The notes under the pieces were generated by a model. The model was not told the DNA's origin. It did no database searches and saw nothing but the letters and a program-made list of their open reading frames with translations. This document shows positions 54,791 to 64,000 of a DNA stretch of 64,000 nucleotides, in pieces (the first letter of the stretch is position 1; every line of letters starts with the position of its first letter). Made by a program: the position numbers and the translations under genes. Source of the stretch: Podarcis liolepis (Eukaryota); the NCBI GenBank assembly GCA_965112155.1, contig OZ218099.1. The stretch is one strand, 5' to 3'.

Positions 54791-55956
54791 GTAATGGGTC
54801 ATGTAAAAAAACAACAACGCTTATTAATGGAGGGCAAAATTGATTGAGGATCAAGCATGGTCAGGCATGAAACATGCTGACTCATTGCCGCCCTCACTTT
54901 TCATTTAAAAATAGAAAGAACATCCATTTCCTCCAGTATTTGCATCAGCCCATAAGCCCATCTCATTGAATTAATCACAAGTGTTGAGTCCCTGTTTTTT
55001 CCTGCTGCTTCAGAACTCAGCAAATCTCCTCAAAATGAACTAAATGGAAGTGCTTTCAATGTACATACTGAAACAAAGTGAACTAAATGCCAATAGATTT
55101 CAGTTATCACTGGATATTATTTTATATCCTGGATGTCATATCCAAAAATAATCAGTGGTCACCCTAAAAAAAGAGGGAAACTAGTTTTGGAAGATTTTAA
55201 AAACATCACCCCCCAAAATTAATAGACCTTTGTCAACAGCCTGCCACATTTTTCTTTAAGCTGAAAACAGATTTCAAAATGAGAAACACTCTCATTTATA
55301 TGTTCCCAAAATAAGTCCCTGTTGTGTGTTACTATTCTGATTATCATTCTGACACAATGAACAGGAGAAAATGAGCAGAATGAAAGGATTGAGTCACACT
55401 TGAGATCAATACAAACTGTAAGGTTGACATAGATGCCTCTTTCCAACTGTAAGAGAATTGAAAGTACAAAGCAATTTACTCCCAACAGTGTTTAGTGTGG
55501 AAATAGGTGCTTATTTAGTCTGAAGTAGACGGCTGCCTCTAAGAAAATGCAGGAGCTTATATTGTCAGTCTAATTCAGAGCTCCACTATGGAGAACTCCC
55601 CCACTTACTAGTATCTTGCTGGGCTTAATAGTGGAAAGGGTAGCACTGCATGCGCAAAGGATACTGGCAGGCTCATTAAAGTCTTGTCAATGTCCATATT
55701 TAGGTTGAAACAAAATGGTGCCCACTTGGAAAGGTGCTAGGTTTCAATCCTAGAAATATACACAAGTTGGGTCTGCTCCCCTTCCTTGTGAATTCTAACT
55801 AATGCAGAAATCTGGCTAGATTGGGAGGTTCTTTTCTGGACATAACCCAATTTGGACTCCACCAGAATCTATTGTGGGATCTTTCCTGTTCCAGGAGGGG
55901 CTTTTCAGGCATGGCCACAGATGCATATTGTCATATACCTGTGGCATGATTGGTGC

Positions 55957-56748
55957 TGTCAGAGCTGCTTGAAGATCCTAGCTCACAGAGGATCACGCTA
56001 GCCAGCGGTCATTAAGTAAAAGTCTTTATTGAATTACAGTTTCCATTCTCACGCTGCTGCGCGCAACTCTACGCCTAGTAGCTAGGTCGGCGAAGCTCCG
56101 TCTGAGTCTCCGCCCTGTGTGCACCAACTTAATATCCTAGCCTTGCTCCACCTTTTCCTCCTGACTGTCCTCCTCTGGGTCCCTCTACCCCCCGGGGCTT
56201 CTTCCTTCCGGGATTCTTCTGACGCTGACCCAGACCCTCCTGCCTCCTTGCGCCGGGCTTTAGGACCTGGCTCTCTTTCGGGGCTGCTTACTGCGCCGCC
56301 TTCCTCTGCATTTGAACTTGGCGCGCGCGCCCAACCTTCCACTTTCCTCTCAACCGTTTCTTCGCTCCCCGATGGAGGTGTGGCCATCCCCGACTCATGT
56401 CCTCCCTCCTGTGGAGGTGTGGCCACTCCTGACTCATGTCCTCCCTCCTGTGGTGAGCTGCCAGCGCTTCCCCCCTGGCTCCCTTCCTCTTCCCTGCTTC
56501 CTGGCGGTGACGCTGGTCCCGATTTCCAGCTGCTCCCCCCTGAGTCCTCTCTGGCTCTGTCTTCCTGGGGTGCCCCCCTAGACTCCCCCCTTGCCCTCGC
56601 CACTGGTGCTCCTTTCTGTGAATCCTCTGATTCACTGGAAAGACTAGGAGATCTCGGGTCGTCGTCGTCACTCATCTTTTCTTCTGCCTCCTCCCCTTCG
56701 CTCTCTGTTTCCTCCCTTGCCCGTGCTTCTGCTCCTAAACCCCTGACA
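55957..56748 (-). repeat. 3' LTR
   Basis: Direct repeat of 61787-62578; AATAAA on - strand at 56025-56030. Confidence 0.96.
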
Positions 56749-59700
56749 TCCATCCCCCCCTCGAAGCCCCCCATTCCCCCCTCCCCTCCTTCCGGTGCTG
56801 GAGCTGGGGGCTGCTGTTGCAAAGGGACGAACGTCGGGTATCGGTCGCTTCCCGTGGCAGGCCTCCATCTGAAGTCTCCCGGGTCTTCCTCCCCGCTCTC
56901 GTCGACGACAGTCACCTCCGCTTCCATCTCTGTGCCGCCGTGCTCGAAACCAGGGTCGTCCCCGAAAACGTCCATGTCCGTCTCTCCCTCACTTCCTCCT
57001 GTCGGTGTTGCTCGTCCTGGGCCTTCCAGCCACCGTCTGCGCCACTGCTCCTCTGGCCTATCGTCCCACCAATACGAGGGTTCTGATGCAGATCCCGAGG
57101 GTGACCCCTCCGGGGAACGGACGTCTTGTGTCGGGTCCTCGTCCGAGTCGAACCCCCGGAAAGTGCTGGCCGAAAGTGTGGGCGTGAAAAGCCAGTCGTC
57201 AAAATATTCTGCTGGCATAGGTCTATGGGGAAAGAGGGCATGAAACTCGTCTTTGAGGAGAGGTTCGTCCAAGGCGTAGCCCGGCACCCAGCTGTTCGCA
57301 CTGGCCGGGGTGCCCTCCTTGGCGAGAAAGTATTCTACCCCCTCTTCCCCCCATCTGGAGTCCAAAATCTCAGTGACTTCGTTGATGCGCTCCTTCTGTG
57401 CCACTTCCGCGTGCCCTGTTCTGTCTCTGACCGGACTCGGTGCTGTTCCGGGTTCCTGGAACCTGTGCGGTGCCTTGTAGGGAGTGAGCACCGATCTGTG
57501 GAATACCGGATGCATTCTGGAACCCTCCGGAAGTGCCAGTCTGAAAGCTACCGGGTTGACCTGCTCTTCGACTTGGTAGGGCCCCAGTTGCTTATGCCCT
57601 AGTTTCTTCTTGGCCAACGACCTGGCCGGCACTGCGTGGGCTGCTAACCAAACCCAGTCTCCCACGTGGAGCTCTTCTCCAACCCTTCTGTGCTTGTCTG
57701 CTTGTACCTTGTATGCGTGCTTGGCCAGCTCCAGGTGGCGCCTCAGCTGATCGTGGACCTCCTGCAGCTCCGACGCGAACGCATCTGCTGTCTGCGGCTC
57801 CCCCTCCCCCATTCTTTCCAGTCCCGGGAAGGTTCTGGGGTGCCTCCCGTTGTTGGCGAAGAACGGCGTGACCCCCGTGGACACGTGCTTCGTGTTGTTG
57901 TAGGCGAACTCGGCAAGCGGTAGGTAATCCACCCACGTCGCAGGCTGTTGATTTGCATAACATCTCAGGTACTGCTGCATGATGGCATTGACCCGCTCCG
58001 CTTGCCCGTTGGTCTGCGGGTGTCTCGCCGACGCCAGGTTGATCTTGACGTTCAGGAAGCCCATCAGCTTCTGCCAGAAATTCGAGATGAACTGCCGCCC
58101 CCGGTCGGACAGAATAGACCGTGGCAGACCGTGAACCTTGAACACGTGGTCTATGAACAGTTTGGCGGTTTGCTCCGCCGTGGCCACCTTCGCACACGGA
58201 ATGAAATGCGCCATCTTGGAAAACAGGTCCACCACCACCAGCACTGCCGTCTTGCCCCTTGAGCTGGGCAGATCCGTGACAAAGTCCAGAGCCACCCTTT
58301 CCCAAGGTTCGACCGGAGTTTGCAGCGGTTCCAACAGTCCGGCCGGCGGTTTGTGCACTGGTTTGGCCCTCTGGCAGGTGTCGCACCTCGCCACGTAGTC
58401 TGCGACCTCCCCTCTCATACCAGGCCACCAGAAATCCCTGGCTACTAATTCCACCGTCTTCTCCTTGCCAAAGTGCCCGGCCGTGGGCGCGTCGTGCAGC
58501 TGCTGCAGCACCTTGGCTCGAAGTTCGTCTCCCGGCACGTAGATGGCCCCTTTTCGGATGAGCAATCCATCTCGTAGCCGGAAACCGTCGGCCGCTGCCT
58601 TGCCCCTTTGCACCTCTGCCATCTTTGCTTGTGCGAAGGAGTCCTCCTGCAACGCACGTCGCACCGCCTCTAGGTCCACGGTCGCCGCGGCGCACGCCCA
58701 CACTGCTGGTGCGAAGATGTGCATGGCGGCCGCTGGCGTTGCGTCCTCCAGATACTGTGGCTTACGGGAGAGAGCGTCTGCCATGATGTTGGTGTCCCCC
58801 GGGACATACTCTATTCGGAAGTCGAAGTTTGCAAAGAACTCAGCCCAACGTATCTGCCTCTGGTTCAGGAACTGTGCCGTGCGCCAGTGCTCTAGATTCT
58901 TGTGGTCCGTGCAAACCTGCACCGTGTGCTTGGCGCCGATCAGAAAGTGCCTCCACGCCTTGAACGCTGCGTGAATGGCCAGCAACTCCCTGTCCCAGAT
59001 GGTGTAGTTCTGTTCGGACTTGCTGAGCTTCCTGGAGTAAAACGCTCCCGGTCGCCACACCCCCTGCGGGTCTTTCTGCAACAGGACCGCCCCCACGGCT
59101 CTGTCCGAGGCGTCTGTCTCCACCCTCATCGGCTTGCTGGGGTTGACATGAAGCAGCTGCTCTTCCGACGCGAAGAGACGCTTGAGTGCCTGAAAGGACT
59201 GCTCCGCCTGCGCTGTCCAAACGAACTTCTTCTTCTTGGAGCTAAGCGTGTCAGTGATGGCCGCTGTCTGCATCGCGAAGCCCTTGATAAACTTGCGATA
59301 GAAGTTCGCAAAGCCGACAAACCGTTGGACCTCCTTCCGGTTGCGCGGACTCTTCCAATCCAACACCGCTCGAACCTTGGCGCTGTCCATGGCGAGCCCC
59401 TTGTCAGACAGCTTGTAGCCCAGAAAATCCACCTCCGGCACGTCAAATTGGCACTTCTCCAGCTTGGCGTAGAGCCTATGTTGCTTTAGCCTGCTCAGCA
59501 CTTCCTTGACGTGTCCGTCATGCTCCTGCTGCGACTCCGAAAAGATCAGGATGTCATCTAAGAAACAGACGCACGTCTTGTAGAGAAGTCCCGCCAACAC
59601 GTGATGCATAAACGCTTGAAAAACGTGGGAGCCATTTTGCAATCCAAAAGGCATAACTCTATATTCGTAGGTCCCCAGTGGCGTGAACATGGCTGTCTTC

Positions 59701-60689
59701 CACTCATCTCCTTCCCGCATGCGAATGAGGTTGTACGCCCCCCGCAGGTCCAACTTGGTGAACACTCTGCCCTTCCGTACCTTTGCCAGGAGGTCGTCAA
59801 TACGGGGCATGGGGAAGTCCGATGGCCTAGTCAGACTGTTCAAAATCCTGTAATCCACTACCAGTCTTTTCTGGGGCGTGTCCCGCTTCTTAACAAAGAA
59901 TACGGGACTGCCCCCCACTGCCCTGGACTCCCGGATGAAGCCGCGTTGCAAATTATGGTCAATGAACTCTTTGAGTTCCTGCAGTTCGTCCTCTGACATG
60001 GAATACAGTTTCCCTTTAGGCAGCGCCGCCCCCGGCAGCAGGTCAATTTTGCAGTCATATGGTCTGTGAGGGGGTAGCCTGTCTGCCTCCTTCTCGCAGA
60101 AAACTTCCAAAAATTCAGCGTACTTGTGTGGAATCGCTTGCAGCGTGCCTAGCAGCAGCTGTGACTCCTCTTCCTCTCCTTCCTGCCTGGGCACGATGCA
60201 GTGTTCAGCACAAAAGGAAGAGCCGAAGGTCAGCTGCCTCTGGTAACAAGCCATCGCTGGGCTGTGCTTGTCCAGCCAACTCATGCCCAATACAATGGGC
60301 GTGTCAGATAGTCGAGTGACGTTGAAGCTGATGATTTCTCTGTGATTCCCAAGTCGCATCACCATTGGTGGCGTCTGCTTCACCACTTGCCCCCCGAGCA
60401 GCTCCCTGCCATCCACCGTGACAACCTGCAGGGGCAGTGTGGCCGGCAGCAACTGCACAGCGTGCCTGTCGACAAAGTCCTGCCCTATAAAGTCCGCATT
60501 GCTGCCTGAGTCAATGGTGATTGGCACGTCCATGGTGATTCCATTGGGCAGTTGGAGAGACGCTGTGAGCCTCACTACTGGTTTGGGCGGGAGGGGGTTC
60601 ACGGGCTGTAAAATCGCTGGGGACTGCGTCACTAACACGTCTGGCTGGGCCCCAGTGCCTCTTCCTCCAGCCAGACAGCCTCGTTTCCC
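56082..60689 (-). CDS. pol: Pol polyprotein (protease, RT, RNase H, integrase, chromodomain-like, long acidic tail), probably expressed by -1 frameshift from gag
   Basis: Protease IDSGS; RT MPFGL and FLDDILIFS; RNase H ETDASD; integrase H..H..C..C, DDE core and GPY. The track ORF 56082-60767 has no ATG upstream of the slip site. Confidence 0.93.
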   Translation of the reverse strand, partial: GKRGCLAGGRGTGAQPDVLVTQSPAILQPVNPLPPKPVVRLTASLQLPNGITMDVPITIDSGSNADFIGQDFVDRHAVQLLPATLPLQVVTVDGRELLGGQVVKQTPPMVMRLGNHREIISFNVTRLSDTPIVLGMSWLDKHSPAMACYQRQLTFGSSFCAEHCIVPRQEGEEEESQLLLGTLQAIPHKYAEFLEVFCEKEADRLPPHRPYDCKIDLLPGAALPKGKLYSMSEDELQELKEFIDHNLQRGFIRESRAVGGSPVFFVKKRDTPQKRLVVDYRILNSLTRPSDFPMPRIDDLLAKVRKGRVFTKLDLRGAYNLIRMREGDEWKTAMFTPLGTYEYRVMPFGLQNGSHVFQAFMHHVLAGLLYKTCVCFLDDILIFSESQQEHDGHVKEVLSRLKQHRLYAKLEKCQFDVPEVDFLGYKLSDKGLAMDSAKVRAVLDWKSPRNRKEVQRFVGFANFYRKFIKGFAMQTAAITDTLSSKKKKFVWTAQAEQSFQALKRLFASEEQLLHVNPSKPMRVETDASDRAVGAVLLQKDPQGVWRPGAFYSRKLSKSEQNYTIWDRELLAIHAAFKAWRHFLIGAKHTVQVCTDHKNLEHWRTAQFLNQRQIRWAEFFANFDFRIEYVPGDTNIMADALSRKPQYLEDATPAAAMHIFAPAVWACAAATVDLEAVRRALQEDSFAQAKMAEVQRGKAAADGFRLRDGLLIRKGAIYVPGDELRAKVLQQLHDAPTAGHFGKEKTVELVARDFWWPGMRGEVADYVARCDTCQRAKPVHKPPAGLLEPLQTPVEPWERVALDFVTDLPSSRGKTAVLVVVDLFSKMAHFIPCAKVATAEQTAKLFIDHVFKVHGLPRSILSDRGRQFISNFWQKLMGFLNVKINLASARHPQTNGQAERVNAIMQQYLRCYANQQPATWVDYLPLAEFAYNNTKHVSTGVTPFFANNGRHPRTFPGLERMGEGEPQTADAFASELQEVHDQLRRHLELAKHAYKVQADKHRRVGEELHVGDWVWLAAHAVPARSLAKKKLGHKQLGPYQVEEQVNPVAFRLALPEGSRMHPVFHRSVLTPYKAPHRFQEPGTAPSPVRDRTGHAEVAQKERINEVTEILDSRWGEEGVEYFLAKEGTPASANSWVPGYALDEPLLKDEFHALFPHRPMPAEYFDDWLFTPTLSASTFRGFDSDEDPTQDVRSPEGSPSGSASEPSYWWDDRPEEQWRRRWLEGPGRATPTGGSEGETDMDVFGDDPGFEHGGTEMEAEVTVVDESGEEDPGDFRWRPATGSDRYPTFVPLQQQPPAPAPEGGEGGMGGFEGGMDVRGLGAEARAREETESEGEEAEEKMSDDDDPRSPSLSSESEDSQKGAPVARARGESRGAPQEDRAREDSGGSSWKSGPASPPGSREEEGSQGGSAGSSPQEGGHESGVATPPQEGGHESGMATPPSGSEETVERKVEGWARAPSSNAEEGGAVSSPEREPGPKARRKEAGGSGSASEESRKEEAPGGRGTQRRTVRRKRWSKARILSWCTQGGDSDGASPT
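56749..56760 (-). other. Polypurine tract
   Basis: GGGGGGGATGGA immediately 5' of the 3' LTR on the - strand. Confidence 0.85.
60617..60689 (-). promoter_or_regulatory. -1 ribosomal frameshift signal (G GGA AAC + pseudoknot)
   Basis: Heptamer 60689-60683 in the gag frame; 6-nt spacer; 10-bp stem GTCTGGCTGG/CCAGCCAGAC; loop CTGGGG pairs with downstream CCCCAG. Confidence 0.82.
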
Positions 60690-61696
60690 TGCTGTGGTCC
60701 TCCTTGCTGTGTTGCTGCAGTCACCATTGCTGAGGCTGCAGTGAGCTTGTGGGGCCTCTGGGGACACTCTTTCGCCATATGCCCTGGCTCCTCACAGACG
60801 TAACACTTCCTGTTCCCTCTAGGAGGCTTCGCTTTCACTGCTGCTGGTGCTAGGGCTCTGGTTGCTGACTGAGCCCTTGCACCTCCCACCTCCATAGGTT
60901 CGGCTCCTCCTCCTGGCGGAGGCGTGGATTGCGTCCGCGCTGCTTCCCTGGGAAAGAAGGAGGGGCCCCCGGCTGGTTCGCGCCCTCCACGCCCTTCGTC
61001 CCTGTTCCACGGACGTCCTTCCAGCCTCACCCCCACTGCCAGTGCCCTCTGAACGACCTCCTGGGTGGTTCGGGGTCTCTCCCCCCTGGCGATCTCATCT
61101 TTAATCGAGTTATGCAGCCCCTCCCAAAAGAGGTCTCTTACAGGAGCCGAATCTCTGTCCCATTCCAGGGCACTGACCAAGGCGAAAAAGCGGGCATGGT
61201 ACTGCCTGACGCTGGCCCTCCCTTGTCTCAGCCCATGCACCTCCTTCCGTGCAAGATCCACGTCAATACTTGATAAAAAACACCCATCCATTGCTTTAAT
61301 AAAGGCATCTGCATTCTGTAGCGCCGGATCCTTATCTCTCCATAAATTGCGTAGCCATGCTCTCGCATCCCCATGCAGATGGGACATGATGAACCCCACT
61401 CTCTCTTGTTCATCTCTAAAGTCTTTATGCAGCAGTTGCAGTGCGCACAGTATGTCGGCTCTAAAGTTGGGATACTGTTGCAGGTTCCCATCGAAGTGAG
61501 AGACCAGCCCGCCTGTCCGTCTCGCCAACCCAATGCCCTCCTGCCGGGGTGTCTGCTTTGTCAGCACGTCTAACCTGACCTGGAGATCCCTGCAGGCTGC
61601 GGCTGCTTCCTCCTCCCTCTTCCTGGATGCTAGAGCCTCGGCGTTCAGTTGTGCCACCGCGTTTCTGAGTTCCTCTATCTGCTGCTCAGCCGTCAT
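60632..61696 (-). CDS. gag: Gag (coiled coil, capsid, CCHC zinc knuckle), 354 aa
   Basis: Intact ORF; LRQGRASVRQY capsid motif, EPMEVG motif, CYVCEEPGHMAKEC knuckle. Confidence 0.93.
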   Translation of the reverse strand: MTAEQQIEELRNAVAQLNAEALASRKREEEAAAACRDLQVRLDVLTKQTPRQEGIGLARRTGGLVSHFDGNLQQYPNFRADILCALQLLHKDFRDEQERVGFIMSHLHGDARAWLRNLWRDKDPALQNADAFIKAMDGCFLSSIDVDLARKEVHGLRQGRASVRQYHARFFALVSALEWDRDSAPVRDLFWEGLHNSIKDEIARGERPRTTQEVVQRALAVGVRLEGRPWNRDEGRGGREPAGGPSFFPREAARTQSTPPPGGGAEPMEVGGARAQSATRALAPAAVKAKPPRGNRKCYVCEEPGHMAKECPQRPHKLTAASAMVTAATQQGGPQQGNEAVWLEEEALGPSQTC

Positions 61697-61773
61697 GTCG
61701 TCTGCCGTTCGTGAGCTTGCTAGTAGGCACCTGTGTCTCTCCCCTCCTCGAGGCTGTAGATGCCCACAAGTTG

Positions 61774-61784
61774 AGACGGAGCTT
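61774..61784 (-). promoter_or_regulatory. Self-priming primer-binding site
   Basis: AAGCTCCGTCT, 2 nt after the 5' LTR, is the exact complement of AGACGGAGCTT at 61933-61923 within the LTR; no TGG tRNA-type PBS. Confidence 0.78.
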
Positions 61785-61786
61785 AC

Positions 61787-62578
61787 TGTCAGAGCTGCTT
61801 GAAGATCCTAGCTCACAGAGGATCACGCTAGCCAGCGGTCATTAAGTAAAAGTCTTTATTGAATTACAGTTTCCATTCTCACGCTGCTGCGCGCAACTCT
61901 ACGCCTAGTAGCTAGGTCGGCGAAGCTCCGTCTGAGTCTCCGCCCTGTGTGCACCAACTTAATATCCTAGCCTTGCTCCACCTTTTCCTCCTGACTGTCC
62001 TCCTCTGGGTCCCTCTACCCCCCGGGGCTTCTTCCTTCCGGGATTCTTCTGACGCTGACCCAGACCCTCCTGCCTCCTTGCGCCGGGCTTTAGGACCTGG
62101 CTCTCTTTCGGGGCTGCTTACTGCGCCGCCTTCCTCTGCATTTGAACTTGGCGCGCGCGCCCAACCTTCCACTTTCCTCTCAACCGTTTCTTCGCTCCCC
62201 GATGGAGGTGTGGCCATCCCCGACTCATGTCCTCCCTCCTGTGGAGGTGTGGCCACTCCTGACTCATGTCCTCCCTCCTGTGGTGAGCTGCCAGCGCTTC
62301 CCCCCTGGCTCCCTTCCTCTTCCCTGCTTCCTGGCGGTGACGCTGGTCCCGATTTCCAGCTGCTCCCCCCTGAGTCCTCTCTGGCTCTGTCTTCCTGGGG
62401 TGCCCCCCTAGACTCCCCCCTTGCCCTCGCCACTGGTGCTCCTTTCTGTGAATCCTCTGATTCACTGGAAAGACTAGGAGATCTCGGGTCGTCGTCGTCA
62501 CTCATCTTTTCTTCTGCCTCCTCCCCTTCGCTCTCTGTTTCCTCCCTTGCCCGTGCTTCTGCTCCTAAACCCCTGACA
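61787..62578 (-). repeat. 5' LTR
   Basis: Direct repeat of 55957-56748; TATA-like TATTAAG at 61964-61958, predicted TSS ~61933. Confidence 0.96.
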
Positions 62579-64000
62579 GGTGCGTTCCTTTTCATAAAGG
62601 CCACTGCAGAGGCTGCAGTTTGCTTGACATGAGTCAGTCTTTGCCTGCCAGCACCAAGCAGCTGTTCTGGTATTCAGCAGGAAAGGTCCCATTTACACCA
62701 TGCAGTGGGTTGCAGTGTGCACAGGGTCTCTGAACAGCGAGGAACCAAAAATCTGCAAAGCCCACTCAGTTTCACCTGCTTCTGCTGGGGTGAACAAATT
62801 GAGGATTTGATTTATTTATCAAATTTCTCCTCACCTAGCCCTAGCTTTAACTATTCCTACTTCTTGGATAGTTGTAACTATTGGAGCACATACTGACTAC
62901 AGTTGTTGGTTAGAGAGAAAAATGTTCCACATCTCACAAACGGGAATGAAGTGTCTTTCCCCGTAAGCATACTGAAGACCTATGGCATATTTAAAACAAT
63001 AGGCAGAAAGCCAAGCGCAGCTCATTATACATCCTCATTTTTCGGTCATTACAACATCTCTATACAGATGCATTGTTCAGTAGTAACTCACCTCGCTACT
63101 TAAAAGCTGGTCTTGTTTCCTTGAGTGTTCACGCTACTAACTTTGTTTGTATTTGAAATGTTAAGAATTATAAAACTGGTTGCATTTTTTCAGCACTGAA
63201 AACATCAAACCTTTAGGTAATTTTTGAGAGACTGGTCTCTTGGAGAGCATGCAATGTCCCCAAATGAGTCCCATTTTTATACATACATACAGTGTTAATT
63301 GATTTGACGTAGGGTCTTCAATGCACTGAATTTCCAAGGTTGCAAGGCTGGGGGGTGATTGGGAATGCTACAGGACCTCATTGAGTTTACAAAAGTTCAG
63401 AAGAAACTTGCATATATCTGCTACCTTCTTGCCTTCTGAGAACTCTCCATGTTTACCCTAACCAATAAAATATCAGAGTCCCATATATCTCCTTGTATCG
63501 TACTGTATATGTAGGAGCCAGGCCCGGCTGTGTGGCTTTTTGAGATGGCTTTTCTTTTCGCAATATGCCCTTTTCTAATCCTTCGGATGAAATGCTTTAT
63601 TTGTGCCACTGTCTCAGGCATGTTGAAAGATCAGAAAACAGGTATTTGATGATAGGGATGAAATTAGCCTCTGTGCTTCCTTCCATCAATTACTAAGGGT
63701 AGTGCCAGAATACCAGCTTACTTTGAACTGTAGCTGCGGAATTTCACCACTGGGATCTACATGTGAGAGGTCCATTTTCAATATGAAATAATGATGTGAT
63801 GATGAAAAAGCACGCCCCCCCTTTTTTGGTGCAGCTATTAAGAGCATTGGAGCATAGATCCATAATGAATTTTGTAACCTTAAATTTAGGTCCTCTTGCC
63901 AAATAGAAATAACTAGAATGAACTGAACAAAATATTTCCTGTGGTGTAAGATGAAAATCGAGAGCATTATAATGAGCAACCAGACTTCATTATCATGCAT

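Follow-up and report, generated by a model that had tools for sequence, protein, structure and literature searches.

An LTR retrotransposon in the genome of the lizard Podarcis liolepis carries, 2 nt past its 5' LTR, an 11-nt site that is the exact complement of the predicted first 11 nt of its own RNA, and the best explanation of this arrangement, which we regard as probable, is that the element would start reverse transcription by self-priming of the Tf1 type. In the proposed mechanism, transcription would start at A61933, and RNA nt 1-11 (AGACGGAGCUU) would loop back over R-U5 to anneal to the primer-binding site 2 nt past the LTR. Cleavage behind nt 11 by the RNase H that the element encodes would leave a free 3'-OH, from which minus-strand DNA would be extended across the GT spacer, U5 and R. 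We infer the transcription start, the RNase H cleavage and the priming itself from sequence; pol encodes an intact RNase H domain. An initial annotation of this DNA had already arrived at self-priming, and its reading is supported here as the best explanation, all of its sequence-testable parts having held.

The Tf1 primer consists of RNA nt 1-11, which anneal to the primer-binding site and are released by an RNase H cut between nt 11 and 12 (PMC7175516). Both the Tf1/sushi group and the related Tcn1 clade are described as self-priming (PMC6317226), and a passage of PMC4600332 that cites Butler et al. (2001) extends self-priming to elements from fungi to vertebrates. For the vertebrate Tf1/sushi elements it was proposed in 2001 by Butler et al., as cited in PMC6317226 and in that passage of PMC4600332. 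Chromoviruses of the V clade, which stand close to those of fungi, have been described from fishes, amphibians and amniotes (PMC2774666). The literature thus already covers the mechanism, its occurrence in the clade and the clade's presence in amniotes, and our finding, which is expected for the clade, leaves the known mechanism unchanged. To our knowledge, self-priming has been proven in fission-yeast elements only, the vertebrate case being a sequence inference drawn from old or decayed copies. The lizard copy, with its identical LTRs, intact genes, a primer pair lying exactly at the predicted start, and an abundant family in related lizards, is a clean natural case for checking the vertebrate prediction by observation. 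That a lacertid family is transposing now with an 11-nt self-primer, identical in length to that of Tf1, is a more tentative reading that we consider somewhat doubtful; if true, it would mean that the RNase H rule of cutting after nt 11 has been conserved between fission yeast and an amniote, and it would provide a natural vertebrate system for the direct observation of self-priming.

Anatomy and coding capacity of the element

The analysed stretch of DNA, referred to here as the window, is 64,000 nt long and contains a complete LTR retrotransposon on the - strand at 62578..55957 (6,622 bp); all element features given below lie on that strand. By its sequence it is a chromovirus-type Ty3/gypsy element of the fungal/vertebrate clade. 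Its LTR ends were set by aligning the LTRs with each other and by a 5-bp target-site duplication, GCACC, which abuts the 5' LTR at 62579..62583 and recurs downstream of the element at 55952..55956; with GCACC on both flanks, the insertion is clean. The 5' LTR (61787..62578) and the 3' LTR (55957..56748) are each 792 nt long, with TGTCAG...CTGACA termini, and are 100% identical. As there are 0 differences between them, the insertion is very recent. The predicted subdivision of the 5' LTR places U3 at 62578..61934, R from 61933, and the end of U5 at 61787. A polypurine tract, GAGGGGGGGATGGA (56749..56762), directly adjoins the 3' LTR.

The gag gene (60632..61696) is intact and encodes 354 aa with a Retrotrans_gag/Ty3 capsid fold and a CCHC zinc knuckle. 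DUF4939 is matched weakly (28.3 bits against a cut-off of 29 bits), and the top match among solved structures is the PEG10 capsid (7lga, E = 9.5e-4). PEG10 is itself derived from a sushi-type element. The pol ORF (56082..60767, 1561 aa) is likewise intact and is read in the -1 frame with respect to gag. Within the gag/pol overlap, at 60683..60689, a slippery heptamer, G_GGA_AAC, stands in register with the gag frame and is a candidate site for a -1 frameshift into pol; the frameshift heptamer of PEG10 is also G_GGA_AAC.

The domains of pol follow the Ty3/gypsy order of protease, RT, RNase H and integrase, and among solved structures the best match is Ty3 Gag-Pol (E = 3e-135). Catalytic motifs DSG, FLDD, DAS, HHCC and D-D-E are visible in the translation, and the zinc-binding and core domains of the integrase were detected together with a Tf2-1-type SH3 domain (SH3_Tf2-1). 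C-terminal to the integrase, Pfam Chromo is matched weakly (E = 0.0056, 17 bits against a cut-off of 25.1 bits), and PF00385 is present in nearly all of the listed pol relatives of the lizard element. The initial annotation had called the element structurally complete, and both LTRs, the target duplication, the polypurine tract, intact gag and pol genes and the slippery site were indeed all found. From this intact structure and the zero LTR divergence alone, we infer that the element may be active at present.

The pol ORF extends about 460 aa beyond the SH3 domain of the integrase (56082-57470, - strand). This tail crosses the polypurine tract and the whole U3 of the 3' LTR, with its stop codon 9 nt past the 3'-LTR copy of the 11-mer described below, and it has no Pfam match. 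The GA-rich LTR contains long ORFs in several frames, and the tail is only putatively coding.

The self-complementary pair and its predicted fold

The LTR-terminal CTGACA is followed on the - strand by GT, then by AAGCTCCGTCT and CAAC. The GT spacer (61785..61786) between the terminal CA and the predicted primer-binding site AAGCTCCGTCT (61774..61784) is the dinucleotide that integrase would trim; since it is what integrase would remove beside the terminal CA, the geometry is that expected of a true primer site. The site is the exact complement of 61933..61923, where AGACGGAGCTT (61923..61933), the predicted RNA nt 1-11 and proposed self-primer, is preceded in the LTR by GGATATTAAGTTGGTGCACACAGGGCGGAGACTC and followed by CGCC. 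The duplex of 61784..61774 with 61933..61923 is exactly 11 bp long, and both flanking base pairs are mismatched. In the window, the 11-mer occurs at these sites and as the 3'-LTR copy at 56103..56093, and nowhere else. In the 700 nt upstream of the gag ATG, an unbiased search returned the 61933/61784 pair as the lone inverted repeat of at least 8 nt, and a literature search for the 11-mer returned unrelated PCR primers alone.

The RNA start is predicted from its TATA-like and initiator-like context. A61933 is the A of an initiator-like TCAGAC and lies upstream of AATAAA (61855..61860), the sole polyadenylation signal of the LTR, and 31 nt downstream of T61964, the first letter of TATTAAG (61958..61964), which is the sole TATA-like motif of the LTR. 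Being on TCAGAC and 31 nt past the TATA-like T, A61933 fits an initiator at the usual TATA distance. The initial annotation had given the same position relative to TATTAAG and TCAGAC, as well as the exact complementarity of the primer-binding site to the LTR and the lack of a tRNA-type TGG at that site, and each of these was confirmed.

The last of these points bears on whether the primer could come from a host RNA. The 5' LTR is followed by GTAAGCTCCGTCTCAAC with no adjoining TGG, the first one lying about 20 nt downstream of the LTR, and the lack of a TGG at the primer-binding site excludes priming by a tRNA 3' end. There are other ways in which a host RNA could serve: a tRNA fragment, as in the half-tRNA priming of copia-type elements, or a small RNA might pair with 61784..61774, the LTR complement being incidental or otherwise used. 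Half-tRNA priming does exist in other LTR elements (PMC6317226). However, a host-RNA primer would leave unexplained both the exact position of the complement, on an initiator-like motif 31 nt past the TATA-like motif, and the different self-complementary pairs that three clade relatives carry in the same geometry (see below), and we consider it distinctly unlikely. No tRNA gene was found in the 64-kb window, and no Rfam family matches the lizard element.

It is extremely improbable that the complementarity is a mere coincidence in a GA-rich LTR. Compositional bias does favor chance matches to some degree, in that it lifted the shuffle rate above the naive estimate. Even so, among dinucleotide-shuffled LTRs an exact complement of at least 11 nt at an offset of 0-6 nt past the LTR arose in 59/20,000 (0.3%), and at an offset of 0-4 nt in 9/5,000 (0.18%), both rates leaving out of account where the match falls relative to the TATA-like motif and AATAAA. 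A start about 30 nt past the sole TATA-like motif and before the sole AATAAA is a position satisfied by roughly 1% of those in the LTR. Coincidence is also at odds with the recurrence of the geometry in the three relatives.

The initial annotation had proposed folding the leader and had named three inner stems. In the predicted structures of the RNA from 61933 to 61765, the 11-bp helix closes both the minimum-energy and the centroid fold, enclosing a 150-nt domain with nested stems, and all three of the named stems (CCUAG/CUAGG, AGAGUUGC/GCAGCUCU and GAUCCU/AGGAUC) are in the predicted minimum-energy fold. The pair probabilities of the helix are 0.75-1.0 in leaders of 169 nt and 240 nt, and 0.82-0.93 if the RNA is made to start 12 nt further upstream. 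In longer contexts the minimum-energy fold retains the complete helix at 334, 384 and 634 nt, and 10 of the 11 pairs at 534 nt. At 434 nt the helix loses by 1.3 kcal/mol to a pairing with the artificial 3' end, and we discounted this apparent loss as an effect of the truncation point of the RNA. The 11-bp duplex by itself has a predicted energy of -18.2 kcal/mol; the fold energy of the whole leader is unremarkable (z = -1.2). The signal in these predictions is a specific helix rather than overall leader stability.

A helix that closes a 150-nt domain with nested stems could also have a structural or regulatory role in the leader, acting in packaging, dimerization, translation control or masking of the primer site, while the primer comes from elsewhere. 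Stems of this kind, between U5 and the leader, occur in retroviral leaders. We nevertheless consider such a role without priming unlikely: some primer must have its 3' end paired 2 nt past U5, no other candidate is visible, and the pairing ends exactly at the spacer, as the 3' end of a primer requires. Moreover, in Tf1 one and the same helix is both structure and primer (PMC7175516).

The same geometry in environmental relatives

A profile scan of IMG/VR yielded 22 chromovirus contigs, mostly LTR elements assembled as circles; the circular contigs have terminal overlaps of 71-123 nt. Three of them, L006, L009 and L017, show the layout of the lizard element within LTR ends whose positions we deduced from polypurine tract and inverted termini, each contig being a single collapsed circular copy. 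In L006 (termini TGTAAGG...CCTTACA, spacer GC), the pair is 10 nt long (primer-binding site AGATTAGGAT), with its 5' arm 32 nt from the TATA-like motif, and shuffles reached that length in 12/5,000 cases. The pair of L009 (TGTCAGC...CCTGACA, spacer TT) is 9 nt long (primer-binding site CTGTTCGAT), with the 5' arm at 35 nt and a shuffle count of 2/5,000; that of L017 (TGTCAGG...CGTGACA, spacer CT) is also 9 nt long (primer-binding site ACGTTCCTC), with the 5' arm at 38 nt and 15/5,000 shuffles. In each inferred LTR the TATA-like motif is the only one. An unbiased search gave the primer pair as the longest inverted repeat before gag in L009 and L017.

The 2-nt offset after ...ACA is common to these three contigs and the lizard element, and the four primer sequences are mutually unrelated. 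Across distant members of the clade, complementarity is kept while the putative primer sequence is free to change. The initial annotation had made its reading depend on complementarity in related subfamilies; the three distant relatives retain complementarity, with different sequences. The same unbiased inverted-repeat search found no such pair in L007, L021 and L022, which lie outside the clade; L007 and L022 have candidate primer sites that begin with TGG.

Shorter pairs were seen in four other contigs. In L003, L012, L013 and L015, a 7-nt AGAACTC past the LTR matches GAGTTCT about 30-40 nt after the TATA box; in L013 the partner is GAGTTTT, which pairs with AGAACTC via one G:U. We did not accept these pairs as evidence of self-priming, as 7 nt is too short, although they recur in diverged copies.

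Contigs L002-L023 are filed as viral in IMG/VR and are chromovirus LTR retrotransposons. In several of them pol is interrupted by 5-9 in-frame stops, suggesting either that the copies have decayed or that the host uses a variant genetic code.

Placement among known elements and the lacertid family

Over the pol region, identity to the lizard element is 84-93% for Podarcis muralis proteins and 47-49% for proteins of Anolis and Gekko; more distant matches are to amphibian, fish, chytrid, Microbotryum and green-algal chromoviruses. In maximum-likelihood trees of the region from RT to integrase, built without Tf1 or sushi-ichi reference sequences, the element falls with L006, L009, L017 and vertebrate, chytrid and Microbotryum sequences in a clade with an SH-aLRT of 100. 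The clade includes frog, salamander and fish sequences (fish in one of the two trees), and the plant and algal sequences fall outside it. Searches with gag gave eight relatives at 59-89% identity, of which two (P0001 and P0007) have N-terminal extensions that end before the primer-binding site and are uninformative for it. With gag as the query, a scan of metagenomes returned one distant, uninformative contig (L001), and a scan of viral contigs returned no match.

The closest functional parallels are Tf1 and Tf2 of Schizosaccharomyces pombe and Tj1 of S. japonicus, which like the lizard element are Ty3/gypsy elements with a primer site complementary to the start of their own RNA (PMC7175516, PMC4600332). 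The complement is exactly 11 nt long in Tf1 and also exactly 11 nt in the lizard element, counted from the predicted +1. However, self-priming has been shown experimentally for Tf1, whereas in the lizard element it is deduced from the sequence. A chromodomain integrase is a feature of Tf1 and Tf2; in the lizard element the chromodomain match is weak and below the Pfam cut-off. Tf1 has a single gag-pol ORF, whereas gag and pol are separate ORFs in the lizard element, with pol in the -1 frame behind GGGAAAC; the lizard element further differs from Tf1 in its host, its 792-nt LTR, and the long C-terminal tail of pol that runs into the LTR.

Among the vertebrate Tf1/sushi elements (sushi-ichi, Amn-like, V-clade), the affinities of the lizard element are seen in its grouping with Anolis, Gekko, amphibian, fish and chytrid elements, and in a gag that is nearest to the PEG10 capsid, with a weak DUF4939. 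It belongs to a family of lacertid lizards (93% to Podarcis muralis proteins) and, with 0 LTR differences, is much younger than most described vertebrate copies. The Tcn1-clade chromoviruses of fungi, mosses and club-mosses are related to Tf1/sushi and are predicted to self-prime (PMC6317226, PMC7175516), and L006, L009 and L017 show the same layout. The Tcn1 clade differs in having plant and fungal hosts, and in that SM-Tcn1 is without a recognizable self-primer (PMC2864245).

Contigs from four organisms contain thousands of pieces of the lizard family. Among the 40 best-supported of the 130 variable places in these contigs, none lies inside either 11-mer; variable positions near the pair are 61772, 61769-61771, 61916 and 61946. 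At best, this pattern would indicate conservation of the 11-mers rather than covariation between them. Two of the organisms, D and E, have 1,209 and 11,071 contigs, respectively, with at least 80% likeness to 61500-62578, including many rearranged LTR variants, and this abundance points to recent bursts in related species.

Two single contigs show unusual junctions. In one, 61937 is linked back to 61839 by a junction with 2 additional letters; the resulting tandem copy reaches from 4 nt before the predicted start to 16 nt past AATAAA, roughly the length of R, and may either delimit R in a related copy or be a plain duplication. The other runs from the LTR end through GTAA and a T to an LTR start (61783-61787/62578), thereby retaining the spacer together with nt 1-2 of the primer-binding site, and resembles a 2-LTR circle or the remnant of a tandem LTR.
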